In this document: positions 9,435 through 60,670 of the stretch, in pieces
Layout: each line of letters begins with the position of its first letter
Position numbering within the stretch: position 1 is the stretch's first letter
Source: Mytilus californianus
Taxonomy: Eukaryota
Reading direction: 5' to 3'
Length of the DNA stretch: 64,000 nt
NCBI RefSeq assembly: GCF_021869535.1
Contig: NW_026262701.1
Location: 35,960,001 to 36,024,000 of the forward strand
Notes under the pieces: generated by a model
Told to the model about the DNA's origin: nothing
Seen by the model: only the letters and a program-made list of their open reading frames with translations
Database searches by the model: none
Translations under genes and position numbers: made by a program

Positions 9435-10757
9435 CTAGACTAGAATTAAATGTTGCTTGTCGTAGTTCATTCGAATTAAATCACCCAACAGTTTATTGTT
9501 CTTGTTACTTTTAAGCCTGTCTGGGTCCTGGTAAATTCTGGTTGGTAACGTGGGAACAAGCACCGGCTTTCTGCAAGTTTTATAATTATAATAGTCTATT
9601 TCCTTTTGACAAGACGGTAAGAGGTACATTTCTGTATCCTCGTGAATCACAGATTGAAGTTTGTTTTCATGGTCTTCATCTTTGATTGAATAAATCTTAA
9701 ATTTTGGCTTTCTGCATTTTGACAATCTCTTTTTCTGTTTTTGAACACAATTTTTGAGATCACTGTCAGAATGTTTACTTCCTACTTCCGGTTTTGCCTC
9801 AGCAACTTGATATGATACTTCTATGTTTTCCTTTGTGCATTCATGATATTCATTATCATCATCTGATTCTGATTGATCGGCGAAAACATCCGGGTCCGAA
9901 ACTTCCGACTCAGATGTATGTGGCACGCTAGACGACTCTGTCGAAACAGTCGAAAAAGAATCTGTTCGATTGCATCGTGACTGCTCAGAGTCAGTTCTAC
10001 TTAAGCTCTGGATTATTTCCCGCACTTGTTGTTTTAAAAACAAATTTTGTTCAATTTTGTCCAAAAACACAGGATATTCACTTTCAGTACTTTCACCAGA
10101 ATTGAGGTCATATTCTGTCTCACTATCATCTAAATTTTGTTCCGAATTTTGAATTCGGGTTGGTAAAGCAATCGAATCAGTCTCACTTCTATTACAATTT
10201 AATAAATCCACACTTTCATATGTCGGAGTTTTAGAAATCCCATCACGTGCATTCAAACTTATAATTGTATTAGTTAAATCAGAATTAGATTCCAGTTGAA
10301 CTGTCGATTCTTTGGGGACGTCGTTTTGAGATCTAGATACATTTGTAGCACTTTTTATGGCACTAGATTTGGCGGGAATACGTCTGGCAGGCAATACTGG
10401 AACAACCATATATGGTCCTTCCTTTTCGTCTTCCTCTGTTAGACTAGAAGTAAATTTCAAACCAGTCAAAATTCTGAACTGACTTGCTATAATGTTATCT
10501 GGGAGATCCTTAATTTCATCGTAAATATGGGGTGATGACGAACCGTGTAACCCCGTGGTACAGTCATTTAATGCTGTATTGTTTACTTCCTTTGGCACAA
10601 CGTCTGCAACTTGAACACAATTATTTTCGAACTTTCGGAAACCATACGGTGAATTGTCTCTAGATTTTGAATCTTTAAAACCATATTCTGTTGACGAATC
10701 ATCACTACTATCATAACATTTCCGCTTATGCTTTCTTCCTTTGAACCATCGAATCAT
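9435..10757 (-). CDS. Gene A: uncharacterised 440-aa Ser/acidic-rich, probably disordered protein with Tyr-based linear motifs; paralog of gene B
   Basis: 1.3-kb stop-free ORF in AT-rich DNA. First ATG at 10757 (G at -3) lies 23 nt after a splice acceptor (tttatttacAG, 10782-10781); the ORF track's TTG start at 10775 is less likely. Shares colinear motif blocks with the 59444-60670 ORF. Confidence 0.9.
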   Translation of the reverse strand: MIRWFKGRKHKRKCYDSSDDSSTEYGFKDSKSRDNSPYGFRKFENNCVQVADVVPKEVNNTALNDCTTGLHGSSSPHIYDEIKDLPDNIIASQFRILTGLKFTSSLTEEDEKEGPYMVVPVLPARRIPAKSSAIKSATNVSRSQNDVPKESTVQLESNSDLTNTIISLNARDGISKTPTYESVDLLNCNRSETDSIALPTRIQNSEQNLDDSETEYDLNSGESTESEYPVFLDKIEQNLFLKQQVREIIQSLSRTDSEQSRCNRTDSFSTVSTESSSVPHTSESEVSDPDVFADQSESDDDNEYHECTKENIEVSYQVAEAKPEVGSKHSDSDLKNCVQKQKKRLSKCRKPKFKIYSIKDEDHENKLQSVIHEDTEMYLLPSCQKEIDYYNYKTCRKPVLVPTLPTRIYQDPDRLKSNKNNKLLGDLIRMNYDKQHLILV

Positions 10758-10780
10758 ATCGTCAGGCTGCTTCAATCTTC

Positions 10781-10996
10781 CTGTAAATAAATTGATGTAT
10801 ATAAGATCAGCATAGTTTTTTTAATCCGTTGAAATGACTTTTTGTATAAATCAGACCATTCATTTGTCTTCGAATGTGACTGAATGCATGTAATATAGAC
10901 CAGGAAAAGCGACAACTTGTCATGAATAATTTATAAGGTGCTCCTAGTTAAGCATTTACATGATACGTTCTAAAAAGTAAATGTAAATGCACATAC
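10781..10996 (-). other. Predicted 5'-UTR intron of gene A (about 216 nt)
   Basis: Acceptor tttatttacAG at 10782-10781; donor GTATGT at 10996 (alternative AG/GTGTAT at 10998). The presumed first exon (about 11123-10997) has no ATG. Confidence 0.55.
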
Positions 10997-11145
10997 ACCT
11001 ATCAAACACACGTTAATTCAATTCTAACGGAAATGTATGTTTCCCAGACACAAACTAGAATAATTATGAAGGGTTTATATTGACAAATCCAGTTGAGGTC
11101 AAATATGTAACACGGTGAAGAGTTTCAGGTCAGTCTGCTTGGAGG

Positions 11146-11153
11146 TATTTATA
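11146..11153 (-). promoter_or_regulatory. Candidate TATA box of gene A (TATAAATA)
   Basis: Consensus TATAAATA on the minus strand, about 155 nt upstream of the predicted donor. Confidence 0.5.
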
Positions 11154-14100
11154 AGCTACAAACACAAGAGTTATTTATTGTCGTTATAAACCGAACAGCA
11201 GTTTTAAATTTGATTCTTGCAGTTAGCAGTAGTGTTTCCACAAAATCAAAGGTGCAAATTAATTATAAACAAAAGTGTCTGTCAATGTTGTCCTAACTCC
11301 CCATGTCTTAATACGAGAGGCTAATTTTCAATATAAAACATTAAACTGGCATTTACTTTTATTGCATTGAATTTTTTTTTACTTACTTTATATTTAATAC
11401 AATGCAGTGTTGCAATTATCTTAACCTGCACTTAAAAGTCAGATGTATTTGTACAAAATAATTTTTATTAGAAATATTGAGGAAATGACATTACTGTTAA
11501 TAACGACACCTGCAAAAGCTTTTAAATAACTTTTTGCCCATTAACCTATAAAGCGGTAAATCGTTTTTGTTAAATCATATACATCCGTTTAAACTGTCGT
11601 ACTCGATGGCATAGAATTATCAAATTGAAGGCATTTAGAGACGAAGACGAAATATATTTTAATGTCATATTTTAAAATTACAGGATGATTGATGGTAACG
11701 TCTTTTTTATTAACCTAATAGGTACTATTTATACGAAAGGCTACAGGTAACAAAACTAAAAGATACATTAGTATAATGTAACAAGAAATTGACTGATTAT
11801 AGTTTTTCTTTAAAAATTACAGCATTAACAGGTGTCATCTAAAAAAGATTGATCTATTACAACTTATAATTTTCGGATTCAATAAGTGGGAGCAATAAAA
11901 ATCTGTCTGGATATTTAGGCGAGTGAATGATTACAATGCAAGCAAATTAATCATTTCACAAAGAGGAAATATTGGTTTATAGACTAAGTTTAAGGAAAGG
12001 CATCTTGTCATCCAAGTTGGCAGAGGAGATCTTCAATAGGCCAAAAGTAACTGAAAAGACTAATGTCGGATAATGTACAAAGATTGTGGAAATGATTAGT
12101 TACTACTTGTAGCTACAGTTCTGTCAATTAAAATGTTAAACGACAGTTTATCCAACCTACACATTTTGCAATAAAGATATGTAGAAATAATTTCTGTGGA
12201 TTTGCCAATTCTAGAGGTCCTGGTGACTTTCATAGCTTAAGCTACGTTCCTGAACAAAAGGAGTTAATAAAATGTCCTTGTATGAATATATTAAAATAAG
12301 GCGATGTGGTATGATTTTCAGTGAGATAACTATACACCAGAGATCAAATGGCGTGCATGGAAATGGCAAATATAAGTTACCCGTACGTTTGATGCAACAC
12401 TTGTGACAAAATTTGAAAAATAAAGTACGTTTATAAAGAAAAAAATATGCGCAAATATTTCCCTATTAAATTCCAAGAAAGTAACCTTTTAAACTTTTTC
12501 TTCTGATAATTGCCAATTAAAGTTAATTACAGAAAAGTAAGGTTACAATAATCTTAATAGAAAATAACCTTTTAACCTTTTTCTTCAGCTGATAATTGCT
12601 AATAAAAAATAAAGTTAAAATAAATAATTTAGACATTGTGACTTTACCGTATGACAGAATCAAGTGAACCTCAAAATGAAATTTTCTATCTATAGCAAAT
12701 AATACAAACTAATATTATTGTTAATTGCTGGGCAATCGGTAGGCAAAACTAAGTACAAGATTATGTAAACAACTTATGCATCAGACAATACATTAAAATA
12801 TTGATATTATGGATATACAGGAGTTTCTAACCACATAAATCTTGTACATGTTCACCGTCAGAACGTGACAGGCATGTGATATGTTAACAATGTGCATTAT
12901 ATTCGCCACATCAAAGGAAAAGACAACTTATATGCACTTTTTCTATTTGCATAATGCACTTTGCTGGTTGTTAAGTCTTCAATTTTGATTTATGATCACG
13001 GTAGTAATGTTCCTTACTTAAATATCAATTATAGTGCTGCAAGTAGATGTCTATAAAATATGTATATATATGTAAACAATGCACTTGCTGAATGTGCGGA
13101 TTAAAAAAATGTTTAGAAAAAAGTTTATTTGCATATTTGCATTTAATATCATATAATACGCATAATTTTGAGTGTAATTACATGTGAGAAGACACACAAA
13201 GTTTTCTAGAAATGAATTGATATATATTTTCGGTAAACTTGTGGTGTAGTTGTTTTATTTTTGTTTGTTTGCTTCGTTTAATTAAAGGAAATACAACAAT
13301 GCAGCGATTCAACAAAACCACAAACACAAATTTCCACGAGTTTTGTCTTTGATTGTTCAAAATCCGGCACAATTTCACTTATTTCAAAGTGATGCCAATA
13401 AGAACCAAAATGTAAATGAAAAGTGACACATAAAACAATTCTTTTTAGAATTTATGATGCGAGTCTTAACAACGAATGAAAGATAAGGTGTGAAAAATTT
13501 TACTGCAATAGCGTTTGCGTATATGATCATCGGTATATTGAAAACAATCTTTCTTGAGGATGTTTTATTAAGATGTTTACTCATTGTTGACTAACACAGG
13601 CCTTTTACCCGTATCGGTCCATCTCACTCCTACAATATCACTATATCTATAATAAATATTACTACTTGTTACAGAAGTTTGCATCAAACCAACATTGCAA
13701 TCCTCTGATTTAGACCCCGTGGCTATTATTGATGATGTCAGGCCTGCTTTAGACAACTGAAATTGATCCAGTGTAACCTAGCCGAGCAATGACACACATC
13801 TTCATGGCCCTCGGATAAAATAACAAAAATATTGTGTGAAGAATAGGGTTGTCATGTAAATTATGTATTTACATATAAAGTTGTTAAATTTTATTGATTT
13901 AAGGTATCATTTTATTTAAGAATAATTGCAAGTTTAAAATCAAGTCATGGACCTTTAAAATATATTCATAGTGTTTTCACAGATAATAAAAATCGAAGGT
14001 TAAATCGGCATTAATGATACGTGACGTCGACGTTTTAATTTGAATTTCCTCTCTTTATTATAACATTTACAAAAAGATGTTTTTTCTCATTAAATACATA

Positions 14101-17100
14101 AATATTGTGAAAAGATCAGTTTATTACAGTAAGAACATAATAAATAAGCGAATTTCTATAGAATGAATATGTATATTAAATAATATACCGAATCATTAAT
14201 CAATCTGTATAGCTCAAGACTTAAAAAACTTTTTCACGTAATTTCTCGTTTAAAAGTGAGAATATTTCTGTCGGCAAGTATAACCTGATACCTACAAGGC
14301 CATATCTATGCAGTAAATAAATATTGTCCCTGTTCTCTTGAAATCTACGCCTATCTGTATAAAATTTCAACGATCCTATTTAAATCCTTGAAAATGGATC
14401 ATCCAAAGAGATCAATAAAACGAATCAGAACACTACTTGTAATTCAAAAATCTCCTTTGAATTTTAAGAAACGAGACGTGAAAATAATCTGCCTGTTCGT
14501 TAAATGTAAACATTGTATCTTTCAGCTTATTTTTTCAAAGTTTAAACAGTTAGCTTTTATTTACTTATCAGTTTTGAACGAAGGTTGAAGATTTAAGATA
14601 ACAAAAGGAACATTTAAAATGGACTTTAATAACGACCAAACAAGCTTAATTTATGGTTGCCGCGTTTTTCAGCCCATTACTTCTGCGCTTGACCCACAAA
14701 AAGTAAATTGAACGCCAAGATTGATATCTTTTATCTATAGTACATGACGATACATCTTAAAAATTATACAATACAAAAGGGATACATAGTATATAAAGCA
14801 AATGTTTTAGTCTGCGAACAATATATTGAAATATGATAATTGCCTCGGCACTGAATAAAATGTAGTTCAGATTCGATTTGGATATTTCTGAAGTAAAAGT
14901 CCAATTGTCTATTACGGTGATTTCAGTTGCCACATAAATTTGTCAACGGTTGTCTTACATTGTCTTATGTGATATTAAAAAGTTACCTAAAAAATTTAAT
15001 AAGATATCAAGAAAACAATACAAAATATAAATTTGATGTGTGAGTGTAAAACACTTTGCACATAGAAAAGGAACAATTACCCTGGTTGTTTACTCAGGTT
15101 CTAAAGAAGGGTGTGCATTTCCTGCTCCGGTAATGACACCTGTCGTGTTGTTCATAACATGTAAAATTCTATAATAACTCATGAACGGAGAAAGAAAGAC
15201 CTGATAGTTGCCATGATTTTACATATCAAAGGTTCATTCGCACTTTCGTACAGTTCAACCATGTGACTGTCTCAATTTCAAAATAAATCTATATTTTCTT
15301 ATTGCAAATATTAACGATGAGTACCACATTTAGACAAGTCATGAATCTTCTAAATTATTTACTAAATAAATAATAAATTGCAGAACGTCATAAATTATTT
15401 CCACCTGTTACATCAATATATTGTATTGTATATACATCTATATAGAAAAATTAAGTATCTGAGTCGAATATAATTTCAACACCAATGGTTCCTAGGTTCT
15501 GAAATTTAGTCTTTATATAATTTGTCCAATACACTAGCGTGGCGGGCGTGCGGCCTCCCCTAAAATTATCAAAGCATGGGTAGTCCTCAGCTTATTAAAG
15601 AATATTTCGATAATTTTACCTAAAAAAAATATTTAAGTTTGTGCCCCCCCCCTAACCTAAAATCCTGGATCCACCCCTGCACTAGGCAGGGCCTATAGGT
15701 GTTGGCACGAATTACAAGATACAGATAGAAGAACTGAGTACAATGTACATTATTAAACGATACGAAATAAAACTGTACTTTTAAGTACATGGAGCTTGCC
15801 TTCAGTATAACTTAACATAGTTTGATATAGTATCAATGTACTGTATTTATTGCGCTGTGTTTTCGGTGATTTTGTTCTGGTTTCTTTTTATTGTACCTTT
15901 TTAATTCTTTCTTTCCTAATAGATCGCGATTAAGGGTTGATAATGAGTACCCACAAAACTAAGCTAATCTTGCCACACATTACTGAACAATTTTTGAATG
16001 GGCCATACCCAATTAATAATTAGCCCATAATTCCTGTTATTTATTTTTGATTGAAATCAAAAGTAATAAATTGCATTTCAGACGAAGGGACCTCGAGATA
16101 ACGATGAAACGTTGTCGAGTTCAGTGTGTTCGAATCACTAATGCTGGGTCGATACAATTGCGAGTTGACTACGTATATAAGTTCCAGGTGGATTATGAAA
16201 CCAAGTGGTCAGTGTTTAATTACACAGCTTTTCATCAAATCTCTTTTGAGTTTTTTTTCAAATTTAACAAAAATTGCATAATAAGGGTGAACCTCGTATT
16301 GGTTCCTTTTTGGATATAGAACTACCTTCTTGAATGCTTCCCATATGAACGTTTAAAATAATTGACATAAGGAAGTTTTAGTTGTGTCAAATGTATCTAT
16401 GTGTTTTATGTTAACAGTGTTTTATTGTATGCATACACCTAAAAACCTTCGCTTTTCGCCTAAAACACATCTCTTTTCATTCAAATCAACTATAAGCTAA
16501 GATAAACACTCTCAGTGTACGAGGAGAATAAAAAAAAAAGATAACCGTACAACGAATGACATAAATACAAACGTCGAAATGAAATCAATACATCTGAAGT
16601 CTTTGTATTGTACCGGGTATCCAGACCTAAAGATGATTTTCAATATTTCAATAGCAATTAACCCAACAATCATTTTAACGCTTTAGTCAATAACGATGGT
16701 ACAATGATTGTCAGATGGTTTCCTTGTTGGACTGTTTTCTGTGTTTTTGTCCTTATAGTTATCTTGTCATCTTACTAGAAGTACATCACCATTAACTAAA
16801 AATAAGGTTTGTCACTTCTTATCGCTTAAACCAAAATAGGACTCATCTTATTTTAGGTAATTCGGTAAAAACATGAAATTTTCTCGAAAGATAAGAAATA
16901 ATTGATTTATCACATGCAGCTTGAACAGTCACAGAATGAAACAAGCAGTGAAATGTATTAAGACCTCCGTGGAGTTAGGAAAAAATAATTTATAAAAACA
17001 TGTTAGAGAATACCACAGCAGGATGGATTATTCAATATCTATGGAAGAAAAGAACTGCAGCAGACTGAACAGAAAAAAAAACCCTTGTAGTAATCAATGT

Positions 17101-19173
17101 TAAAATCTGAGTTTTCATTAAGATATAAAAAGTCAATTAATATAGCTACACAACTATGATACAAGTCATGTTGGCAAGGGAAAATATTTATTATATCATT
17201 TTAAATTAAATCTTTTTATATTCCATAAAGAGACATAATAAAAAATATAAAGCTATCAGATACAGCCTGGAAATTAATAATGCATTTTATTTTAGAAAAA
17301 AAGCATCCCGAATTTATATGAAACATATGATATGTCATAAAATTTCTACATCTGCTGCAGGGTGACAGGTCGTGTGAATCCAGCCATATACACACAGTTT
17401 GTAACACAATTACACATGTAACATGTGTGTTAATAGTTTCTGTATGTCCAAAATTAATTTGTTTGTTATATAAATGATATAAATGTCTTATTAGTATAAC
17501 AAAGATTGTCTGATATACCCTATAGTTAAGGAGCATGTCGACCTTGTTATATTATATTGTGAGATGATTTTATTCAATTGAACTTGCATGTATTTTTTTC
17601 TTTAGAAGTTATTTGATTTTAAGGTGTTCTTCTAGAATTAAAAAAAATATGTAATTGTAAATATTAAAGTCAACAAAAATAACATAAAAAACATGGGACT
17701 GTGATATCCAGTAGATGTTTACATTTTTGTCCTCTGGTCTTTGTGGTAAAGTTGTCTTGTCCTTATTTTTTATATTGCATATTGAAATAAAAATGGATCA
17801 CATCATCATTGACCCCAATAACCTTACAGACGGAGACCATAAGGCCCAGAAAAGAATTCCACCAGTGCAATGACTGTATGCCATATTGAAACTGGTATTA
17901 AAAAGTGTCAAGCTTAAAACAACCAATTCTAGATGAACCAATAGATCTCAAATTCTACTGGATTAAATTTTAACAATTAGTAAATAGATTTTCCTGATTT
18001 TTATGTCCATAACCATACTCCTTGGTCCCAAAAACCTTTCAATGTAACTCCCCATACAAATCAACACTTTTAACGATGACTTTCATGTCAAAGGTTAAAA
18101 CAAACATCGTACGGTGGCCTACATCCTCTTCATTTGAACTTTGGTGGTAAGTTGTCTCATTGACAATCTTACCACATCCCTGTTTTTATATTGTCATCAT
18201 TTCCAAGTAAATATCTAATGAAGGCAGATAATTTTTCCTTAATTATTAGAAATTGAGTCAATTGGTTTGGATAGTATTGCAGTCTGCGCAGGAATCTTAA
18301 ATCTTCAATAAAAAAGTATGAAAAAAAATAACGAACTCAAAGGAGAGTTAAAAAAAGGGGAGAGTCCATCAAACCTTACAAAAACTAAAGGACAACCTTT
18401 AAGGTAAAAAGGTATTTACAAAAATCATCTTAAAAAGATTTAAGGTTTGTCTCAACATGGCTTCAGGGATTTGTTCAGGTACTATGAATGAAACATTGGA
18501 GTTGTCACTATTTTCACACAGGTTTGAATACATACATGGAGAAAACTGATACAAGTTGAAATCTGTCTGAATTACCAAACGTGACAATAACAAAAGACTA
18601 CTACATTAACTTATAGACTAAAGAACTGCTTGATTTGTTATAGGTTTATATAGAGTATACAAGAGATTATAAACTATATACAAAATGAAATTATTGTTGA
18701 TTTTGTATCAATAATGTCTGTATAGATTGAAAAATGGAAACTTATTTCCCAGTGTTAAAAAGAACGAATGGAATTTTATGAGCAACGGAATAATTAATAT
18801 TGACATTAAAATGTTTTCAGACAACTTATACTGTTAACAGAATAAAATCATTCTTACGATCAATCGCCGATGATTCTTATAAACACTATCATCTGAGAAA
18901 CAGTTAAATTATTAAAAAATTACGAAGAGGAAGGAAGGAAGACCCTATCGTTAACGTAATGACAACAAACTAATAATTATATTTTAAGTTAATTAAAATT
19001 TCCTTGTGTGTTGGATAGATGATGAACTAACATAAAACCACACACAGCCTGGATACATACCTTTTTAGATTCTATATTGAGATCCATATGACATCTTTAA
19101 AGTTTTCTCAAAATGTAATCCTTAAGACATCAAGATTGAATGCTTATACCGTTAAGGTGTTGAAATTTAACTC

Positions 19174-19316
19174 GACAGGTAAAAATCTAAACATGCACAC
19201 CTGAGTTTAGGATAAAAGCATATTAAATAGGCGGAGCTAAATGACATTTATATGACCAATCAGCCCGAGGCTTTCAAACCAACATATAAAGCGTCAATAC
19301 TGCACAAAAGTCATTC
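19174..19316 (+). promoter_or_regulatory. Promoter-like module S1: CAGGTA, GC box AGGCGGAG (19229), CCAATCAG (19256), GGCTTTCAA, TATAAA (19285), Inr TCATTC (19311)
   Basis: Canonical order of Pol II promoter elements, with 28 nt from TATA to the Inr A; homologous to the module at 50378-50460. Confidence 0.5.
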
Positions 19317-19652
19317 ATAAAATGTAAATACAGCTTCTGTGGAAAAAAAAAACAGCATAAAAATATAGTGTTACTTAACAGAATTTGAAAACAGATATTT
19401 GCCTATTCACAGCTAAATGGATTATAAATATAGTGGAATGAAATGTCATAAGTTATTGGCCTTGCTTCGTATGGAAGTCTATGAAAGGTTTAAATATGCA
19501 TTAACGTAAAAAAAACGAACCATGCAGGCATAAGAAAGAACCTTTCATTTTGTGAATTATTAAAGTGCAAATATCTATATGTGCAGCATCTAATTATATT
19601 TGTTCATAATTCAATTATGAATGATCATTTTTGACAACTTCTGACCGTAACT

Positions 19653-19840
19653 GATATTCTGAAACCTTAAGACATATTAATTCAGTGAACACACATTATT
19701 AAGATATAGTGCATAAACATAGAAGTTTCAATGATAAAATTTATTTGATATTCTAAAACCTTTAGACATATCAATTCAGTGAACAAACTTTATTAAGATA
19801 TATTGCATAAAAATAGAAGTGTCAATGGTAAAACTTTAAG
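19653..19840. repeat. Two-copy tandem duplication, 94-bp period
   Basis: gatattctgaaaccttaagac... at 19653 repeated at 19747. Confidence 0.8.
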
Positions 19841-20979
19841 TGCACACTATCAACAATTTATGGTGCTTGTAATTCACAATATGAAAATCATATTGAAAAT
19901 GTATGAAAATTTAATTCTGACATACCAAAATTTGTATTTGATAGGTTATATCGTCATTAAAAATACCAAAACCAAAAGTTTGAAAGCATAAAATGTGCCA
20001 CTTTACAAAATGAACATAAGATATAGTAAAAAGGTGAAAGGTAAGCTTTTTCTGAGAGAGTTGAAACCTTGCACTTTTTGTATTTACAAAACAAAAGATG
20101 CAATAAACCATGCCCGATTCAATTATCTGCTAAAGAGAGAGAGAGAAGATACAAACAGAGCTATCAAAAACCACAAGTCGAATTATAATAGCATCATGAT
20201 TAACAAAAAAGACTAAGAACAGTTCATAAAACACAGCATAGAGAACAAAATAATGATTGAGCAACTTTTTACACACTATCGGCTGCAGTTTTTTTCAGAG
20301 GGGTAATGCACAGTGCTTAAAATGATCTTATGCAATTCTCGAAGTAATGGCTGATACAGAAAATAAAATAAATGAATAATGTAGACGTGTTTCCAACTAT
20401 AAATAAAAGATTTCAACTAAAAAAAAAAAACATGCATACAATAATCAGCTCAATGTAACGCTTTTGGAAGATTTCACCTCATTAAGAAACGCGTTTGCTT
20501 TTAAATTGATATTGGCATAATAAATTTTAAAAATGGATATGTAAAAAAACAACTATTTTTCAAAAACTTGATCTATAAATTTCACAGTACACACTCTATG
20601 ACCGGTTATCGGTACGACAGTTGCAATATAATTCAATATAATGAATGTACAACACATATTAATATCTGTCGTAAACCTTTCCGAAATCCATTTCATTGTA
20701 TTGCAATGGCAATCGGAAACTCAGATAAAAATCTGCTGTACTCTCTAGGAATTTTATTAAAGATTTAAGATTTTTTTTAAATGGCTTTGGTGGAAGAACA
20801 ATATAAGGAAACTTGGTCGGTTTGTGAAAATATCTGTCAAGCGTTTGTTTCGATGGAACTTTATGTAGTTTAAATATATAACCAGAGTTTTATTTCAATT
20901 AGATTTCACAGGTTACAAAACCCCAAAAGAGGATCCATGAATACCCTTGTATATCAAATATGAATAACAAATGACCGAA

Positions 20980-25103: not shown

Positions 25104-25246
25104 ATAATAATCAAGATGTTTTTAAATATACAAATGATTTATGCAAAATCAAATCGTTCGGACATAAACCAACACGAAAAGGATGGTTGTCTTTTTCACA
25201 CCTTGACAGAATTTCTCATGGTTATCGTCAGACCAGGTTAGGCGAA

Positions 25247-46174: not shown

Positions 46175-46234
46175 TATCTCTGTTGATACAATATGGCAGA
46201 TCCTATGTTATCATCACGGAATGCATTATCACTA

Positions 46235-49508: not shown

Positions 49509-49541
49509 CAATGAGGTTCTATTCTGAATAGAACCTCATTG
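49509..49541. repeat. 33-bp near-perfect palindrome
   Basis: caatgaggttctattc-t-gaatagaacctcattg. Confidence 0.9.
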
Positions 49542-50377
49542 CTTTACTATACAGATATGATCTTAACCAGCTCTGTCGTGAAATAGACCAACTTGTCCAG
49601 TAAATGATTCGGAGACTGCGAAACCAGGCAATCATGTTTTCTTTCTACGTCCTCTTTCATTTGTATTAACTAGGTTATATATACAGTGTGGTCCTTGATC
49701 TTATTTTCTCAACAAATTTTGACTTCTATTTTATAATATAGCTATCATACGGTAAATAGGCCGTTGCGACCTCATGTTCAGTATGTAACTGTGTGTATGT
49801 CCTCTTTATTAGCATTTTTCCTGTATTATACCGACAGTTACAGCATCGCAAATATAATAGTTCTATGAATATAAGGGCATCACATCGTGTAAGTATAGAA
49901 CATTAATTAAAAACCAAACAGTCAAATGTGTTACTGATGGAATCTGAGACTCAAGGCTCTGCTTGAGAATGCTATTACACCATTACAGTGTAATTCTTTT
50001 ATCAGTTGAAACAAACAAGGCAATAGAAACTTTTGTGAATTTATAACTGTTTGGATGTAAAACAGTTTTATATTTAAAAGAACATGCATGGTATTTTGTC
50101 AGTCAGTGATCTGGTTGTTCTCGTTCCGTCCATGCAATTGACAACATTGTTAGAGCAAACTTTATAAGATATCTTTGAAATAAATAAAAAAATCTATTTG
50201 GCATTTGGATATGCTCATTCATAATGTGAGCTAATGACAAAAATGTTTTAAAATATTGCCGTTTTGAAAACCATAGGATTAATAATAGAGACTTGTGTCA
50301 GGTTATTTACATTTAAAAAATCATAAAGTATTAAAATCAGTGTTATCAAAAGAGCAATTTACCTGTTCGTTTGATGG

Positions 50378-50460
50378 TTATAAATTGAAAACCGATATCT
50401 CATTGGCTATTATAGATAATGTGACTCCGCCTCTTTTAAAATGTGTAAATTTCACCTGTG
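50378..50460 (-). promoter_or_regulatory. Promoter-like module S2: CAGGTG, GC box AGGCGGAG, CCAATGAG, GGTTTTCAA, TATAA
   Basis: On the reverse strand it has the same motifs in the same order as S1, with near-identical GC-CCAAT and CCAAT-TTTCAA spacing but diverged spacers. Confidence 0.45.
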
Positions 50461-53400
50461 TTGAAGAATCACTATCAATTAAGTTGTATAAAGTGTTAAA
50501 AGAGAAAGCAAACAATCTACCACTGTGCTACTGATATATAGGAATATAAAAAATATTTAAGGTAAGTTTATTTTTCTTATTTTCATAAAAACGAAAAAAT
50601 TATCATGGATTTGAAGGAAGTATTAATGAAGATTATAATTAACTTTGTATGTCTTTTTATACAATATATATATATATTATATTAAAGGTATTGAGTTTCA
50701 AAATTTATGTTAGAAAATATTATAATAAAGTCTATGGTTGTCTTATGTTGTACGTATTTTAATGTTTTGTTGCTATTTGAAGCATTTTGTGTTGATGGCA
50801 GATCTTTTCTAGTTAATTTACAACTTTGTGTACTCAATTAATAAGAGCTTCGCATATTATAAAGACACTCGTGTTTGTAAAAGACTTTGTGTAGTCCTCT
50901 AGGTGTCTTCAGTTGGTTTTATTTGCTGTTTGGTCGCTGTGTATACGTAATTGACGTCTTTATTTATTTACATATCTCGTAATCATCATCATTGTCGTCG
51001 TCAAAGAAACCGAGTAGCTCATATTTTTAGAAAGAAGAAAGTAATCTGACCCTACGAATACCGTTTCTTTTATGGTACATGTAGTTTTGGTTTTCACAAA
51101 GGCCTTATATTTCCCAGACTGTAACAATACCATATATTTCACAATATTGATAATATAAAGTGTTTATATACGTGTTGCAATCAAGATAGAGGGCTGATCT
51201 TCAAAATTTTGAAAAATGATCAGGACTAAAAATATATATCAATCCGGTCGATATTTCTTTATCGCGGGAATTTTGTGTCTTTTTAAATTGCTGTCTCATT
51301 GATGTTATCCACTGATTTACCTTTATTAATAGATGTAGGAAAATTTTGATATTTGCTCGTTTTTTTTTGTTAACTTGGTCCGACATCAATCGGCTGATGC
51401 CACTTCCCTCTCCTGAATAACCCCGTATGTCGTATATTTCATTTTATGACCAACCCCAATGTTTTTTTTACACGAAACTGAAAACTGCATGTATAGATAT
51501 TAGCAGAGACGTTTTGCTTTATGTGGTTCTGATATTAGTAATCTATCCAAGATTGTAAACCGAGACCAATACTCGGGTGACCTTCATGTCCTAGGTTTAA
51601 GTTTGGAGGCTAGCTGCTACACGTATCACCGAAACGGCAATCATATCAAATCTCCCTAATTTTTCTTTAAAAAAAAGGAGGTCAATCTGGGCATGCATTT
51701 GAACTACGACATATGACGATTTCAATGCGCGTGACATATGTTTCATAAGTAATCCCGCATCACTGAACATTTTACGAACGATGCGTTTTGATTTCTTTGT
51801 CTTTTGATCATACATGAATTTCACACAGATTTTATTATAAGAAAAGGAACTTGTTTGACTCAGTATAATATGTAAACTCAGCCTATAACATGTAGGGGAT
51901 ATATGTAGCTTTCACTTAAAAAATCACTACCGTATGTAGTGCACTAATGTTTAAAGTTTGTTGAAAAATCGATTGCAAAAAAAAAAACAACAAAATAGTG
52001 TGTTCCACAAGTCATAACAAACATATATGGCCACTTACTGTCTAACCAGCGACATCACTTGATCTTTCAAATTTAATTTTCCATCAGAAGCAGGGAAGAT
52101 GGACATGTTTAAAAAACACTGACCAAAACCACTTAGGATATTTAACAGATGGATAAAAATGTTTGTCGGTATCCCGGGTGAGAACGTTATCTTTACGACA
52201 TATAAATAGCTGTGTAATTGACAGTTTAAAACTCCCAAGTATCCTCATTGATACACGATATCTCTGCTACTGCTTGCCGTCAAAGGAATTTCCCAATACA
52301 CCTTCTCCGCCTTCAAGTGTGAAGAACACTTAAATCACAAGGAGGGTTTCTTGTTCCTTTCATATGGAATAATCTTGTGACTTCTATTCTGATTTATGGG
52401 TCATAGATGAAATAAAGAAGTTGATCTTTGTCTTTATCAAGGGTCTGCACGTAGAACACAAGACAAAAAGCGTGTGAGAAGTAGAAATTAAGATGTCACA
52501 ATAATTGTCTTCGGATTCTTCAGATCTCTTTTATTATATAGTCTTTTGTTTTTAGGTTACCTACGTTGTTTTAGAAATATCGTTCTGGGTGACAATGGGG
52601 ACATTAAATTTTCTTTAGATCTACATGAAAAACACACATTAACAAATATGTGAAATATAAAAAAAAGTGATGATATTCATGATTGATACATGAACCACAA
52701 CAAACAATAACCAACACATATTTTTTTTCCGGCAAGAAAGTAAACCGAACAATGAAAGTAACTTGACATACTACAGGCAATAATATGGTGGGATTGAATT
52801 ATTTGTGACTTATGAGTTTGGTATATTCCGCCTCTTTTGTGTAGTAGAAAAAAACTGTCCTAACTGTTAAAAAACAACTTTGAAGTGATATGGAAAGTTA
52901 CTTAGTTAAATCCCATCATATAATAAATGTGCATGTATCTGTATCAAGGAAGAATGTCTATCTCATGTGTGGATCATAATTATTTGCATATTCTGTGCGT
53001 AAAGTTTTTTCTCTTGGATTTGTCCTGTTATATGCATGTGAAATTTGTAACTTGACGTTTCACAAACAACAAGGCAATCCATTTTTCTTGGGCAAGTTGG
53101 TTAGTAACTATTGCAGGTTATGGCGTGGTAAATGTACATGAAATATTATATTGTGATTTCTGACAGAAAATTGTAGTAAATCATAGTTTCATTTGCTTAC
53201 AAATTTATCTTTATTTCTATAGGTTTTATGTATTGTTTTATGTCTGATAAGCATATGTCCACAATGCTTGTCATATTGCTCCACTGTTTGTAGCCTATTC
53301 TCTGATCTGTTTTGTTCTAACATTAGAGTTTAAGGAGCTAAAGCCTGTTCAGAGCGTAGCAGATCGCAAATCATTGACTATGGAAATGATATAGAGGCTT

Positions 53401-54893
53401 CACTCAACTGATGGCTATCGTTGTAGTGATTTTTTTGTGACGAGCAGTGATCAATACTCCCACTTACATTTAAAATAAAATAAAAAACAATATTTAAATA
53501 ATGTTACCAAGTTAATAAATAGTTTTGTTTCTGTGCTACCCGGGGAAGTGAGGCAGACTTGAGGACAAAATAAATAAAACGATTGTAAACACTGATAGGA
53601 AAGCAGTAACAACCAACACCAAAACTATTTCCTGTACCCGAGGCGCCATCTGGGGTAAATAATGATGTTATCCACTTCCGATAATGTGATGACTATAGAT
53701 ATCCCTTAAAAAAGTGTAACATTACGTGCTTTCTTGTTAAATATGCCATTCAATGAAGATATAAATATTATATGTTTTTGTAAGTTGTCAAACCGTATCA
53801 ATTATAATTGACTGAAGTCGCGACTTCACAAATCAATTAAGTGATTTTCTTTTCCGGTTGTCATTGTTCGATGTTTTTTGTAATGTTTATTAGTTTGGCC
53901 TTCTGAAACCCCTTATTATGGTGAAGTACTGTAATAGATTAGTTATTTTTCATATTTTGTTCAACTTCGATAAATTATCTGTTCCATCTCTCTGAGGACT
54001 GTGTTCATTTCTTTATTTTTATACCTATGGGGGCCATCTTCTTATGATCAAAGTAAACTTATACGAGACATATTTTGACCTTCCGACATTAGCCAAATAA
54101 ACACCTATCATTAAAATGCATATATAGAATATCATCAATAATCTGTATAAAAGATATTAAATATGTTTTAAAGATTGGTCTCAATTGCACGTTTTATAAG
54201 CCCCTAGCTTTTATTAAAGTAGACGGAAATTGTCTCTTTGAAAGACATATAAAAACTAATAAAAATAAAAACTTTTTTGAATATGGAAAAGTTTTATAAG
54301 TTTTCATAATTGAAATAAGAGATTAAGTTGTATTTTATGATTATTTGCTGTTCAAGACGTTGTTTTATGTTTCCAGACAACGTAGCGTTACTGCATTCAG
54401 TCACTGGTTTTAAAATAAAATTGGAGAAAATCATCAACATAGAAAGCTTTTAATGAGAGTTTTAAATTTATTTGTTGTATGTTAAGTATAATTCTCAGAG
54501 ATTTATGTAATTTTAAAGTTGAAGGGGACAATTACCCCCTTAAAGGCATATTCACAACTTCAGGGAGTAGAAATCAACATTAAATAAGAAAAAGACATTA
54601 TAATAAGAAGGAGTTAAAAAAACCTCAAGTTCACTAATGCCTTCTGATGCCTGTAGAAGTACAAGACAACATTATCAAGAGAGAGAGAAAAGACCATTGA
54701 ATTCTGAGATACCAGTTTATTCTCCTTTGTAGAACAACTCATAGTCTCTGAATTACTTTATTTGTCCTCATATATTGTGAACTATATTTTTCTTGGCGAT
54801 TTTTTTTGTTTGATAAAGATCTTCACGAGTTTGTAACGGAGTTTCCTCTCTGTGCCCCTGGTAGAGCTAACGATACTTTTATCTGCCAATGCC

Positions 54894-56058
54894 CATGTAC
54901 ATTGTGGCATTAGTTTAACTTTGTAATATCTGGTCTACATGTACATTGTGGCATTAGTCTGACTTTGTAATATCTGGTCTACATGTACATTGTGGTATTA
55001 GTATGACTTTGTAATATCTGGTCTACATGTACATTGTGGCTTTAGTCTGACTTTGTAATATCTTGTCTACATGTACATTGTGGCATCAGTCTGACTTTGT
55101 AATATCTTGTCTACATGTACATTGTGGCATGAGTATGACTTTGTAATATCTGGTCTACATGTACATTGTGGCATTAGTCTGACTTTGTAATATCTGGTCT
55201 ACATGTACATTGTGGCATTAGTCTGACTTTGTTATATCTGGTCTACATGTACATTGTGGCATTAGTCTGACTTTGTAATATCTTGTCTACATGTACATTG
55301 TGGCATTAGTCTAACTTTGTAATATCTGGTCTACATGTACATTGTGGTATTAGTATGACTTTGTAATATCTGGTCTACATGTACATCATCAGTGTGGCTT
55401 TAGTCTGACTTTGTAATATCTTGTCTACATGTACATTGCGGCATCAGTCTGACTTTGTAATATCTTGTCTACATGTACATTGTGGCATGAGTCTGACTTT
55501 GTAATATCTGGTCTACATGTACATTGTGGCATAAGTCTGACTTTGTAATATCTGGTCTACATGTACATTGTGGCATGAGTCTGACTTTGTAATATCTGAT
55601 CTACATGTACATTGTGGCATTAGTCTGACTTTGTAATATCTGGTCTATATGTACATTGTGGCATTAGTCTGACTTTGTAATATCTGGTCTACATGTACAT
55701 TGTGGCATTAGTATGACTTTGTAATATCTGGTCTACATGTACATTGTGGCATTAGTCTGACTTTGTAATATCTGGTCTACATGTACATTGTGGCATTAGT
55801 CTGACTTTGTTATAGCTGGTCTACATGTACATTGTGGCATTAGTCTGACTTTGTAATATCTTGTCTACATGTACATTGTGGCATTAGTCTGAATTTGTAA
55901 TATCTTGTCTACATGTACATTGTGGCATTAGTCTGCATTTGTAATATCTGGTCTACATGTACATTGTGGCATTAGTCTGACTTTATAATATCTTGTCTAC
56001 ATGTACATTGTGGCATTAGTCTGACTTTGTAATATCTGGTATACATGTACATTGTGGC
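54894..56058. repeat. 44-bp minisatellite (catgtacattgtggcattagtctgactttgtaatatctggtcta), about 26 units
   Basis: Period 44 (54901 to 54945); one 7-bp insertion near 55385. Confidence 0.95.
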
Positions 56059-56928
56059 AAGTGATATTTTATTTCAACGGAGAAATTGTTTTTTTTGCAC
56101 ACCCGACATATTTGTACAAGTTATAATAGTTTATCAGATATACATGTAACAACATTACATGACAGTAAAATACAGCTGGTAGCTAGAACATAGATATATG
56201 ATTTATGTAGGTCAGAAATACTGTTGTTGCATGTTTTTATCATTGCAACATTTCACCTTTTCCTGTTTCCGAGATTTTCAGGAAAAACAGACTTTTTAGA
56301 TTAAGATCGCTATCAAACATCACCATAAAATCATTTTCTGACACTTGACATTTCAGGATTGCATTTTTTATAGCAGCCATATAATTTTAAAATTTAAACT
56401 AAAATTAAATGCGATAACAATCAAGTGCACTTTAATCACGTGACTTTAATGTATTTGTCTGATGGGAAATGTATATAATACATGAATTATGTGTAAAGTA
56501 AAGAAAGGCTACGCCTATTTATATAACAAGAGACCTATATGTAATAGTGCTGCACTCAGCAAAACAGAATTGTGTCCTGTTACTTTTAATAGAAAGAAAG
56601 GATGATGTGTATTTGTCTTCAAACACCTGCACGAAATTGGAAAAAAAAACAGAAACAAAAACAAAAAACACAAAGACACATTGGCCGCTTGTATTGCTGT
56701 TCTTTATCTTAAATTCAGAGTGAGGCTTACTATTCCAAAAAGAATCTCATATTTCACTGCAAGTTTCTAGTACCGGTTTGTGTAAAATGTTTTGCTACAT
56801 GTCAATAACTTGGCATTGCAGCACACATGTGCAGGGTATTTTCAGCACAATACAGACAATAACGATGACAGATAATTAATTTAGAATAAATACTGTCAAA
56901 GTTTGCCAGACAATCTCGAAATTTAGAA

Positions 56929-56966
56929 ACAAGGATTTGTATAGTGAGCACTATACAAATCCTTGT
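56929..56966. repeat. 38-bp palindrome (18-bp perfect arms, 2-nt loop)
   Basis: acaaggatttgtatagtg-ag-cactatacaaatccttgt. Confidence 0.9.
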
Positions 56967-57477
56967 CAGAAACCATACAAACATTTACATGTATTACTAA
57001 GTGTCACTCTTCACTGTTAGCAGATGTAAGTTAATAATACGGAAAGGTGTTTGGACATTCATAAGCCTAGAGAGATACGTACTAGTAAGGTGAAGAAGCG
57101 TCACCTAGAATCATGGATAAATTAACGATTTAAATGGCTTTATTTACTTTGCTTGAACATTTCGCCAGGATTATTTATCAGTTCATAACACAACTTTGGA
57201 TTTAAGAGCTGTCATACATGTATTTACTGAGCCCGAAAATTAACTTTCACACCTTCATGTCACCCGTGTAATAAATTTTGACAGTAGTTTAATTGATTTC
57301 AGAATACTGGAAAAATAAATCCTATAAACATGTTTTATTACCTTTTTAAATCTTGTGAGAAAATCAGTGGGAGTTGAAAAACTAAAATTCTGAGACACTA
57401 ACTATGATTTTATGCAGCTAGCCTTGTGATGGTCACTGAAAATTACATTTCAAGAACCTGCTCTGGCAAGAATATAT

Positions 57478-57682
57478 ATAGAAAAAGAAAGGATATGGGG
57501 TATCCATCCATGACATAAAATCAATATATGCATAGCAAAAAAAAACAAAAAAAACGCAAAGGAACAGCGCTTTCATTGTTCGTCTTAAAGTCAATGTGAG
57601 GCCTTGATCACGGTGCAAAAAAACCCTCTGCAAGTTTAAGACGGTCCCTATATATAGCACCGGCTTGAGAGGAGTTCTTTGA
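57478..57682 (-). repeat. Repeat family C copy
   Basis: Reverse complement matches about 30925-31110 (aaagcgctgttcctttgc...catggatggatacc). Confidence 0.85.
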
Positions 57683-58862
57683 AACTGACGATCACGCTAC
57701 AACTGAATTAAAGAACAAAGTCATGGAGTATTATTAATCAAATAAATCTGGCAAAGAAATCAAATAGGTTTTTTTTTACACCCAGTGTATAGTGACTTTA
57801 GCAAGTCTTAAGATACTTGTATGTATTAAACGTTTTCTGGTATATATATCAGTACTCGCTCAAAATATCATCATGTCTAAGATATTCGAACCTACGTTCA
57901 AATGCTTACTTTAAATTTGAGACTAACACAATTTTAGAAAAAAAATACTAGGGAAAATCTTAAGTCAGTTTAAATCGAAATTGTTGACTTTTTCAGGACG
58001 TTTAAAGTTTATAGGTAAGTCTAGGAGTGTCAGAAATGCATTCTCTAAATTATTCATTTCTAATATATATTTAAAAAAAGTCATTATTTATATATATAGA
58101 CAGTAAAGGCTAAATGCTTTCTCATTCTAATCGCGCAAATTTCCATTATGATTACCGATTGACTGAATTTTCTGTTTGACTATTTATCCCAAATGTATCA
58201 TCAGTTTTATGTTATTAATGAAATAGTTAAAATAACCGCGGCTGCTTAAATTCACGTCATTTGGTGGATAGTTATCTCACTACAATCATACCACATCTCC
58301 CTATTGTATACTGCTCATACAGGACATAAAACTATTGATGTTAGTAATCCTCCTTCCAGCTTCACGAGTCAACGGGAAGCATATTGAACTCCTTTTTAAT
58401 ATATAGATACATTTACATGCAATCTATTTGCGCCTTTGGTTAGAACCAAATTGAATTGTAACAAAATTTCAGGACTGTGATTACTTTCTTTTTTGCAGAA
58501 TTTAAGTCGTAAATTTTGACACTAAATTGTAAAATTTAAATTTTCTGTTTCATTTCATGATCTTTTGAAAGATAAGTTAACTCCTTCCTCAAAAGTCACT
58601 GTATTAATAAGTTTTTGTAACACCGTGCATGTCATCTAAGCGACTGACACAATTAATGATAAAAGGGCACTTAATTAAACAAAAGCTAATCCGCTTAGGA
58701 TCAAAGTGTTGAAAACGTTTTAGAGTTAATTAGTCTTTTACTAGTTATTTTCACTTTTTAAATTTGAGTGACTCATTTAAACCGTCAGGTAAATGCTAGC
58801 AAAGTTAATTAGAGAGATCACAAAATCAAAATATTAAGAAGTTAATATTGCTTTTCTTGGAT

Positions 58863-58870
58863 TATATAAA
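58863..58870 (+). promoter_or_regulatory. Candidate TATA box of gene B (TATATAAA)
   Basis: About 160 nt upstream of the GTAAGT donor, similar to the gene A layout. Confidence 0.45.
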
Positions 58871-59014
58871 TAAATGGTTTTAAAAAAGTGTTACCAAACT
58901 AATTGAAATCGTGAGAAAATTAAGTCAGAAAGGCGACAGTACCCAGTGGGATACAATTGACAAAATATTTATTAAGTTTGCTGAGTTATATCTATATTAG
59001 AATATCAAGGCAAA

Positions 59015-59023
59015 ATGAATAAA
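59015..59023 (+). CDS. Predicted first coding segment of gene B (ATG AAT AAA = M-N-K), spliced in phase 0 to 59444
   Basis: caaaATGAATAAA/GTAAGT: A at -3, consensus donor at 59024, in frame with the main exon; intron 59024-59443 (420 nt). Confidence 0.55.
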
Positions 59024-59443
59024 GTAAGTATGCATGTCATGTAACTGTGATAAGTTGCACACGTTTTGAAATATAAACTGAATGATCTTTTAAAAAAGTT
59101 AATATTAGCTTTACACTGGCATATATTCTATGTCGCTAATGCGTAACCATTAATTAAAATGCGTAAAACTGCTACGAATGATTTTAATAGATAGTTTACC
59201 ATTAAAATGTTTGCTGCCACCAGTGCAATTTATTGATGTTTTATCAGTTGCATAGTTTACTTACAATCTCATACTTGACCTAATGTGCTTTACGATAAAC
59301 ACAAAGGGTTTTTGATAAACAAACATCGTTTGGAAAATAAAATAATAATACCGAAAGGATCAGTCTCTTAGAAACATACGCTTAAAGCATATACTAACCT
59401 TTGTTTAAAATCCTAAAAATATTTTTACTTTTTTTATTTGTAG

Positions 59444-60670
59444 ATGTTTCGGTGGCTAAAAAACGGAAAGAACAAAGAGAAGACCTCCAAAGAAAAATCT
59501 GTTAGTGATAATTATGGTTTTCACAACCAGTCAAATTCAAATTACGGATTCCAAGAAAGTAAATGTCAAGAAAATCTGGATTCTTCAGTTCATATTTATG
59601 ATGAGATAAGTGAAGTTTCAGAAATTTCATTTTCAAGGCAATTCACTCTTTTACCAGAGAAAACTAACATGGGAAATAATGTTGAAGGACCATATTTAGT
59701 CGTACCAATATTACCAAGTAGGAGAACATCTTCAAAAAGGGATGAAGTTCAGGAAGACGAAACAGATTTAAATAAAAAATCGTTTATGAAAAACGAAAGG
59801 AAACAGAGAGTATACAATGCACCTTGGGATAAGCCTAAAACTGAGCAAGGTGAAAAACATAAAAATTCATTTATTCATCCAGCATTTCGTGACTCAGATT
59901 CTGGCTACACGTGCAACAGTGTAAGCACCAGAACGGACTCCGATCGTGTTAATAATGACAGTGATACAGGATGCGAATATGACATGAGCATTTCAACGGA
60001 AAGTGACGTTAGCAGCGAGTATAAGGATCTTATAAGTAAAATACAAAACAATTTAACATTAAAACATCAAATCTTAGAAATGATAAAGGAGTCTGAAAAT
60101 GGGGATAGCGGGGAAATTAAACCGTCTGTAAAGATCACGTCATCATCTTCGCTCGATTCTTGCGAGTTCATTCGGTCACGTGATACTTTTGACAGAGACG
60201 ATACTGAGTCAGAATACAGTAGTGGATTTGAGGAATATGAGTTGGACGAACATTTGTCATGTGAAATTCCCTCAGCAAAGACCGTAAACAGAAAAAGTAA
60301 ATTTCATAGGAATACCTCTGCAGCAAGTTCTGAAAGTGGAAAATCTACCGTAGATCCAAGTGTTTCTAATACCGAGACGTCGTACAAATTACAAACCAAC
60401 AGCCTCAAAGAACAATATGTTATCCCCAAAAGGACCTGCAACCTTCAAAGTAAAAGTTCGACCTCAATAGACATTTCTAAAGATAAGAATGTCGACCTTT
60501 ATGGCATATGTTCAAGATCCAAACGGAATTCGATGCATTCAGCCTCACCAGTATTTCCTAGTCCAACAAATACCTACCAAAAAACTAGCAACACTAGATA
60601 TTCCAGTTCAAATAGAATGCTCGGGGATCTTATAAACATGAACCATAACATGCAAACAATGAAATTTTAA
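59444..60670 (+). CDS. Gene B main coding exon: uncharacterised 408-aa (411 with exon 1) Ser/acidic-rich, probably disordered protein; paralog of gene A
   Basis: 1.2-kb stop-free ORF directly preceded by a strong polypyrimidine acceptor (tttttacttttttttatttgtAG/ATG). Motifs are colinear with gene A. Confidence 0.9.
   Translation: MFRWLKNGKNKEKTSKEKSVSDNYGFHNQSNSNYGFQESKCQENLDSSVHIYDEISEVSEISFSRQFTLLPEKTNMGNNVEGPYLVVPILPSRRTSSKRDEVQEDETDLNKKSFMKNERKQRVYNAPWDKPKTEQGEKHKNSFIHPAFRDSDSGYTCNSVSTRTDSDRVNNDSDTGCEYDMSISTESDVSSEYKDLISKIQNNLTLKHQILEMIKESENGDSGEIKPSVKITSSSSLDSCEFIRSRDTFDRDDTESEYSSGFEEYELDEHLSCEIPSAKTVNRKSKFHRNTSAASSESGKSTVDPSVSNTETSYKLQTNSLKEQYVIPKRTCNLQSKSSTSIDISKDKNVDLYGICSRSKRNSMHSASPVFPSPTNTYQKTSNTRYSSSNRMLGDLINMNHNMQTMKF

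Follow-up and report, generated by a model that had tools for sequence, protein, structure and literature searches.

A head-to-head pair of mussel genes belongs to an unnamed, motif-ordered protein family conserved across at least three phyla

Do two long open reading frames (ORFs) on opposite strands of one mussel locus represent genes, are they related to each other and to any known protein family, and what might their products do? These questions are raised by a stretch of 64,000 nucleotides (nt) of Mytilus californianus DNA (RefSeq assembly GCF_021869535.1, contig NW_026262701.1, positions 35,960,001 to 36,024,000 of the forward strand), which in its full length is called the window here and is numbered from its first letter. 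The window holds three ORFs of at least 150 amino acids (aa) in all, and two of these, ORF A at 9435-10775 on the minus strand (440 aa counted from the ATG at 10757) and ORF B at 59444-60670 on the plus strand (408 aa), are the subject of this study. An earlier note, made from the letters alone, had described them as a divergently oriented pair of ancient orphan paralogs that define a motif-only protein family, and as the best candidate for an undescribed system in this DNA. We find that A and B are transcribed, spliced and constrained paralogous genes of a family that has no Pfam entry; our confidence in this is high and applies jointly to the parts demonstrated below, and the mechanism proposed further on is graded separately, on its own.

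Pairwise comparison of the two proteins gives 30% identity in a global alignment, with the motif blocks collinear, and BLASTP detects the C-terminal block alone (E 9e-6). A hidden Markov model (HMM) built solely from A-type sequences, to which the B clade did not contribute, nevertheless gave B a score of 127 bits (E 5.5e-35 at Z=1e6); the best of 500 shuffles of B reached 2.5 bits, and for this reason we regard the paralogy proposed in the earlier note as real. The shared blocks listed there were all found in both translations, in the same order and collinear in the global alignment, and a profile search, one of the checks suggested there, matched 66 representative clusters.

Both genes are transcribed and spliced, as seen in RNA reads and in RNA or transcript contigs. 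For gene A, RNA-seq coverage (two raw-read RNA runs with two species labels, and one RNA contig) is limited to 9170-10782, and read orientation in the stranded run X22 is consistent with minus-strand RNA. RNA reads and the RNA contig ending at 10782 run on into 19063-19092, a segment with a single occurrence in the window, and the intron spanned in this way has a canonical donor (GTATGT) and a canonical acceptor (TTATTTACAG). The mature mRNA contains an in-frame TAA 5' of the ATG at 10757, which places the start of A there rather than at the TTG at 10775 and gives a protein of 440 and not 446 aa. The model of gene A, with its untranslated regions (UTRs) and coding sequence (CDS), is as follows.

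19061..19121, minus strand: exon 1, the non-coding 5' exon, with donor GTATGT from 19060; 5' end provisional
10781..19060, minus strand: 5'-UTR intron of ~8.3 kb, GT..AG
9170..10780, minus strand: exon 2, with the entire CDS and ~200-260 nt of 3' UTR; 3' end approximate
9435..10757, minus strand: CDS, 440 aa and stop codon, from the translation, with the in-frame TAA upstream

For gene B, three spliced transcript contigs (L004-L006) connect 50561 to the coding exon, one of them (L005) also links 60802 to ~61493-61529 by a splice in the 3' UTR, and the mature mRNA carries an in-frame TAA five codons 5' of the ATG at 59444.

50450..50561, plus strand: exon 1, non-coding, with donor GTAAGT; the 5' end is a minimum
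50562..59443, plus strand: 5'-UTR intron of ~8.9 kb, its acceptor AG directly before the ATG
59444..60802, plus strand: exon 2, with the whole CDS and the start of the 3' UTR, from transcript contigs
59444..60670, plus strand: CDS, 408 aa and stop codon, from the translation
60803..61492, plus strand: 3'-UTR intron, donor GTAAGT and acceptor TTTCAG, with exon 3 near 61493

The two genes are thus built alike, each with a non-coding exon, an intron of 8-9 kb and one exon with the entire CDS. The divergent orientation noted earlier holds for the whole genes: A lies on the minus and B on the plus strand, and their 5' exons, at ~19.06-19.12 kb and 50.45-50.56 kb, stand head-to-head ~31 kb apart. 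The similarity extends to a core-promoter signature shared by both.

19229..19260, minus strand: gene A core-promoter signature, ATTGG (inverted CCAAT), ~20 nt, CTCCGCCT and a T/A-rich box
50402..50432, plus strand: gene B core-promoter signature, ATTGG ... CTCCGCCT and a T/A-rich box

The element CTCCGCCT was observed three times in the window against an expectation of 0.22, and two of the three copies lie in sense orientation upstream of the A and B 5' exons; the third lies at 52305-52312 on the plus strand. The promoter and exon 1 of B are ~98% identical to those of Mytilus edulis, versus 87% over the entire aligned stretch. A and B would have arisen when a duplication in inverted orientation took in promoter, 5' exon and whole-CDS exon.

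Purifying selection, which the earlier note had read from conserved islands, is borne out for both genes by ratios of nonsynonymous to synonymous divergence (dN/dS) of 0.12-0.21 between species. Gene A gives dN/dS 0.14 (dS 0.22, dN 0.030) against its congener ortholog and ~0.12 against a more distant mussel, with dS near saturation, and gene B gives 0.21 (dS 0.295, dN 0.062) against M. edulis. Compared with 96%-identical transcripts, B has a dN/dS of 0.37 at dS 0.047, a ratio that probably reflects within-species polymorphism. The amino-acid differences are located in the linkers and spare the motif blocks.

Contrary to the earlier note, neither gene is an orphan, and the pair does not by itself define the family. 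A profile of 25 sequences matches the 66 representative clusters at E up to 1e-3, and the named relatives come from Mollusca, Brachiopoda and Nemertea, being exclusively bivalves, gastropods, the brachiopod Lingula and the nemertean Tubulanus, all of them lophotrochozoan. Orthologs of A were found at 94%, 71%, 69% and 64% identity and those of B over a range of 96-49%, and relatives of A at 30-43% include scallops (Pecten, Mizuhopecten, Ylistrum) and Pinctada. Among the gastropod members are those of Patella, Haliotis, Pomacea (943 aa), Nucella (~1030 aa), Biomphalaria (1931 aa) and Candidula, with members of ~3000 aa in Plakobranchus and Elysia, and a KLSCRAT motif marks one clade of relatives (P0042, P0046, P0055, P0065 and others). 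The family is conserved across at least three phyla and is unnamed, its members being labelled "uncharacterized" or "dentin sialophosphoprotein-like" in public records.

In the 1.65-Gb genome of the mussel itself, a profile search found only A (E 2.4e-135), B (E 2.3e-110) and a third paralog, C, which has a 334-aa ORF and lies 14.6 Mb off on the same contig.

G000:C121:50655803-50655967 (= L009:1495-2499), minus strand: paralog C, from the profile search

The full collinear set of motifs, which opens with the WLK-basic motif at the N-terminus and closes with the terminal NRLLxDLxxMN, is present in both A and B. Paralog C, with orthologs at 43-46% identity (P0083, P0084, P0086), retains the N-terminal WLLKKK, YNEPWD, the acidic cluster, both helices, SGF[FY]E and the terminal NRLLGDLIQMNYEKQ, and is without HIYxEI and GPYxVVP.

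These results bear on the plainest alternative, that A and B are non-functional ORFs which arose by chance, as pseudogenes or from a transposon. An intronless CDS can come from retroposition, and repeats flank gene A; against this stand mRNAs spliced through canonical 5'-UTR introns, the dN/dS of 0.12-0.21, orthologs across phyla, the conserved promoter and a count of only three copies in the genome. Splicing, selection, orthology, promoter conservation and copy number together refute this explanation, which we give next to no probability.

To which family, then, do these genes belong? In Pfam-A, A has no match and B a single one, DUF4390, at E 0.17 and 11.8 bits where the cut-off is 27. None of five long gastropod homologs matches a Pfam family, and 51 members scanned singly gave one chance match to Mis12 (E 0.0065). 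Among PDB chains, the best match to the family profile was an unrelated transcription regulator (E 1.8), and in the ESM Atlas nothing at or above 0.85 was found with A or with the Lingula and Pecten proteins; KRAP, FAM212, AMER, DUF4592 and an arthropod 264-aa cluster in the ESM Atlas were considered and set aside as noise level. Literature searches found no paper on HIYEEI, HIYDEI, GPYLVVP or GPYMVVP, and nothing relevant on "dentin sialophosphoprotein-like" in bivalves. The earlier statement that no named family or folded domain can be recognised here therefore agrees with Pfam, PDB and ESM Atlas alike.

What the members have in common is about ten motifs in a fixed order, and this order is identical across all members scanned for motifs. 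The order begins with M-x-x-W-[LI]-K and a basic run, YGF, HIY[DE]EI, GPY[LM]VVP and YxxPWD; continues with C-E-Y-D and an acidic Ser cluster and with the amphipathic helix ...Y..[YF]L.K...NL.LK..V..II; and ends with S-E-S-D-D-S-S-G-Y-Y-E, E-x-Y-x-x-P and the terminal helix N-R-L-L-x-D-L-[IM]-R-M-N-[YH]-D-[KR]-Q. Three of these, HIY[DE]EI, GPY[LM]VVP and ExYxxP, are near-universal. In the alignment of 51 members, the conserved columns of the N-terminal part read M.rWlk..kk, yGf, HIY.EI, GPYlvVP and dt..EYD.sS, and those of the rest read Y...L.K...NL.LK..v..iI, vSslsss, seS..ssgy.ec, E.Y..P and NRLL.DLirMNydkQ. The corresponding features of A and B lie at the following positions.

10512..10529, minus strand: HIYDEI of A, residues 77-82, with H, I, Y, E and I each present in 90% or more of the 51 members
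10398..10418, minus strand: GPYMVVP of A, residues 114-120, from the family alignment
9996..10076, minus strand: central amphipathic helix of A, residues 228-254, with AlphaFold2 predicted local distance difference test (pLDDT) ~95 and an invariant N-L-x-L-K
9453..9497, minus strand: C-terminal motif NKLLGDLIRMNYDKQ of A, residues 421-435, a predicted helix
59591..59608, plus strand: HIYDEI of B, residues 50-55, from alignment and motif scan
59687..59707, plus strand: GPYLVVP of B, residues 82-88, from alignment and motif scan
60611..60655, plus strand: C-terminal motif NRMLGDLINMNHNMQ of B, residues 390-404, from alignment and motif scan

Of the blocks first seen in A and B, PxLPxRR and [SR]QF..L are limited to mussels and do not characterise the family. 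Conserved islands within fast-drifting, length-variable linkers, as described earlier for the pair, are seen across the family, whose lengths run from ~370 to ~3000 aa, with the linkers accounting for the variation. The terminal motif begins ~19 residues before the C-terminus in every full-length member, independent of protein length. Heterobranch gastropod homologs (P0053, P0057, P0058, P0062-P0064, P0078) reach 1850-3000 aa by linker growth alone; their motifs keep the same order, and the terminal one keeps its spacing from the C-terminus. Tyrosine is the sole residue type enriched in conserved columns (odds ratio 5.6-8.9, p about 1e-3), accounting for 5 of the 24 columns in which at least 90% of members agree, and Y79, Y116, Y216, Y228 and Y378 of protein A are each kept in at least 90% of the 51 members.

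The chain that carries these motifs appears to be largely unfolded, as the earlier description of a disordered scaffold had suggested: disorder is predicted along nearly its whole length, with three helices excepted. AlphaFold2, run on A with the 51-sequence alignment, returned a mean pLDDT of 52.6 and a predicted template modelling score of 0.25, with helices at 87-98, 228-254 (pLDDT ~95) and 422-439 and one four-residue turn. The chains are strongly hydrophilic (mean hydropathy -0.9 to -1.07), and since the Kyte-Doolittle 19-residue average has a maximum of only 0.82, we see no transmembrane segment. The hydrophobic C-terminus reported earlier is present as a tail, which spans 3-5 residues and forms no such segment. 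The N-termini, MIRWFKGRKHKRK and MFRWLKNGKNKEK, have a net charge of +4 to +5 over 20 residues and are without a hydrophobic core, and for that reason no signal peptide is recognised. Composition is rich in S/D/E, long middle parts are strongly acidic (net charge -9 to -13 per 40 aa), and the acidic Ser clusters are short, e.g., SESDDD, with no SSD/DSS tandem repeats in the A or B translations.

Such a composition presumably lies behind a second name in the records, and with it a second alternative, namely that these are secreted acidic biomineralisation (shell-matrix) proteins related to dentin sialophosphoprotein. NCBI gives the name "dentin sialophosphoprotein(-like)" to scallop and limpet members, and dentin sialophosphoprotein is, like the family, Ser/Asp-rich, acidic and disordered. 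The family differs from it in lacking a signal peptide, its N-terminus being basic, in lacking DSS repeat arrays and other SSD/DSS tandem repeats, in sharing no homologous blocks with it, and in having a homolog in a shell-less nemertean. Because of the missing signal peptide and repeats and the nemertean homolog, the label is compositional only; the shell-matrix explanation is effectively refuted, and we consider it extremely improbable.

How old is the A/B pair? The duplication is older than the split of the sampled mussel orthologs and may at the same time be specific to the mussel lineage, which leaves the word "ancient" used earlier in doubt. In a 38-row tree, A nests with pteriomorph orthologs (96/95), and the long-stemmed B clade falls in a polytomy with gastropods and the pteriomorph A-like clade; a 26-row tree recovers A and B as sisters (support 82). 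PxLPxRR and [SR]QF..L are common to mussel A and B alone, which favours a duplication within the mussel lineage, and long-branch attraction is a possible cause of the A+B grouping because both stems are long.

Turning to what the proteins might do, we infer the function of the family from its sequences. The reading we favour, at a confidence just short of even, is that the family is a cytoplasmic, membrane-proximal phosphotyrosine docking scaffold, since HIY[DE]EI(P), the YxxP sites and the Trp-basic N-terminus resemble known ligands and rules. The Trp-centred, Lys/Arg-flanked N-terminus would keep the protein at the inner membrane face, where the conserved tyrosines would be phosphorylated by tyrosine kinases. 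HIpY[DE]EI would then dock Src-family or Nck-type SH2 domains, and the Y-x-x-P sites (E-x-Y-x-x-P, Y-x-x-P-W-D, I-Y-x-D-P) would dock Crk/Abl/Nck-type SH2 domains; the acidic Ser clusters would serve as CK2-type phosphosites and the central and C-terminal helices would bind constant partners. Paralog C would, under the same scheme, have lost the two strongest tyrosine motifs. Modelling two copies of the central helix (A residues 205-265) as a homodimer gave a score of 0.02, which we take as evidence neither way.

The resemblance to known ligands can be followed motif by motif. Songyang and colleagues reportedly found in 1993 that pYEEI is the optimum of Src-family SH2 domains and that pYxxP suits Crk/Abl/Nck. 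The phosphotyrosine site HIYDEVAADP of Tir from enteropathogenic Escherichia coli (EPEC) has served as a strong Nck SH2 ligand (PMC4238058), and the mussel HIYDEI agrees with HIYDEV at 5 of 6 positions, including the His at -2 and the Ile at -1. Nephrin (YDEV) has a Nck-recruiting site as well. The family differs from both in having Ile, not Val or Pro, at +3, and most members read HIYEEI(P), nearer to the Src-family optimum pYEEI; the likeness to Tir is that of a convergent short motif, not of homology. For the N-terminus, one study indicates that aromatic residues with aliphatic and basic flanks favour membrane insertion of disordered regions (PMC13516693), and MFRWLKDKKK agrees qualitatively with that rule.

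As an architecture, the family is comparable to the docking proteins Gab/IRS/Dok/FRS2, the p130Cas substrate domain and PAG/LAT, which are likewise long disordered chains with ordered tyrosine motifs of the pYEEI/pYxxP type, near the membrane (a proximity that is conjectural for the family), with fast linkers and kept motifs. Several conserved tyrosines in SH2-ligand contexts on a predicted disordered chain were indeed found. Unlike these proteins, to which it has no sequence homology, the family lacks PH, PTB and SH3 domains, a transmembrane segment and a lipidation site (A and B have no Gly2 for myristoylation, and Pfam scans found no PH or PTB), and it has its own W-centred polybasic N-terminus and two conserved helices, with tyrosine phosphorylation a prediction. 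Another relative in kind may be paxillin, whose LD motifs (LDxLLxxL, binding FAT-type four-helix bundles) the N-R-L-L-x-D-L-[IM] helix may resemble: both would be short, amphipathic helices of Leu/Asp type within disordered scaffolds with YxxP sites, and the family differs in its register, LLxDL, in its single copy and in the position at the extreme C-terminus.

Several points weigh against the docking-scaffold proposal. Phosphorylation, binding and localisation of these proteins are predictions from sequence, and the SH2 assignments are drawn from short motifs, which can serve otherwise; YxxPhi, for one, doubles as an AP-2 sorting signal, a conserved Tyr can be a plain binding hot spot, and the basic run at the N-terminus might just as well be a nuclear localisation signal. 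The proteins have no PH, PTB, myristoylation site or transmembrane anchor, unlike classical docking proteins, and the sole SH3-type motif (PxLPxRR) is restricted to mussels. Moreover, HIYxEI and GPYxVVP are absent from paralog C and its orthologs, and the core function common to the family may therefore lie in the helices and not in the tyrosines.

The charge pattern invites the alternative of a nuclear or nucleolar acidic phosphoprotein, in which the N-terminal K/R run would be a nuclear localisation signal, CK2-phosphorylated patches would bind histones or other basic proteins, the helices would be interaction modules and the conserved tyrosines would be binding hot spots, not phosphosites. 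The N-terminal charge of +4 to +5 with its K/R clusters, the long acidic stretches of -9 to -13 per 40 aa and the S/D/E-rich, disordered chains are all consistent with it, as is paralog C, in which the N-terminus is still basic and the acidic clusters and both helices persist without the main Tyr motifs. An invariant Trp beside Phe/Leu in the basic run is, however, atypical of classical nuclear localisation signals, the conserved columns are enriched in Tyr and not in Ser, Asp or Glu, and the Tyr motifs resemble known SH2 ligands closely; we judge the nuclear alternative unlikely.

The same tyrosine motifs can also be read unphosphorylated, as ligands of the AP-2 mu2 and appendage domains (YDEI, YLVV, PWD/LPDF) in a disordered, multivalent coat linker, which would make the family an endocytic or trafficking accessory. 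YDEI and Y[LM]VV match YxxPhi, endocytic accessory proteins typically carry long arrays of motifs in disordered chains, and YxxPWD and the "E.Y.LPDF" block of non-mollusc members presumably recall DPW/DPF appendage ligands, a likeness that we treat as a lead only. The motifs here are single-copy, whereas endocytic accessory proteins usually repeat DPF/DPW/NPF; Pfam shows no ENTH, ANTH, EH or other folded module; and the invariant H-I-Y-[DE]-E-I-P context exceeds YxxPhi specificity. An endocytic role thus seems to us quite improbable.

Between A and B (17-40 kb) there are ten ORFs of 103-149 aa, none with a Pfam match, and no Rfam family or tRNA was found in the window. The segment 24500-32000 has a G+C content of 0.36-0.40 against about 0.31-0.33 elsewhere and holds several ORFs of 107-149 aa on both strands, none of them matched in Pfam; a degraded mobile element is one possible origin, and exons missing from the annotation are another. 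Downstream of gene A lie two tandem arrays, one at 6842-8462 with a 55-bp unit in 29 copies (90% matches) and one at 5265-5871 with a 42-bp unit in 14.5 copies (92% matches), and the 55-bp array is also present in orthologous contigs (L001, L002) of a related mussel. A 154-aa ORF at 5380-5844, which sits within the 42-bp array, is probably a repeat artefact. Finally, ~50 nt at 12286-12339 have very high RNA-seq read and contig depth (summed contig depth up to ~3400), with flanks that vary between records and back-joints in some reads; the varying flanks indicate a dispersed short repeat and not a local transcript, and this points to a fragment of a short interspersed nuclear element (SINE) or a miniature inverted-repeat transposable element (MITE), or to a common UTR element.

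On present evidence, the genes represent an uncharacterised family of the familiar motif-array kind and not a new kind of system, and nothing points to joint action of the two genes such as the earlier word "system" would imply. A bolder idea, which we consider possible and rather doubtful, is that of an undescribed, lophotrochozoan-wide signalling scaffold whose function resides entirely in short linear motifs kept in order like a "barcode". Its elements would be an N-terminus that inserts into membranes, tyrosines that dock SH2 domains and two helices for partner binding, all older than the mollusc/brachiopod/nemertean split and set in linkers that vary ~eightfold. If that were true, it would amount to a lineage-specific assembly of phosphotyrosine signals with no ecdysozoan or deuterostome counterpart.

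Lophotrochozoan genomes contain many conserved unnamed genes, and this family can now be defined by its motif signature, in place of a misleading compositional label. It also offers a clean natural case in which disordered proteins of different phyla preserve the order of their motifs. If the tyrosine motifs are true SH2 docking sites, the family would add an extra, lineage-specific node to mollusc tyrosine-kinase signalling, with a possible bearing on immunity, adhesion or development, and the three mussel paralogs, one of them without the main tyrosine sites, would provide a built-in comparison.

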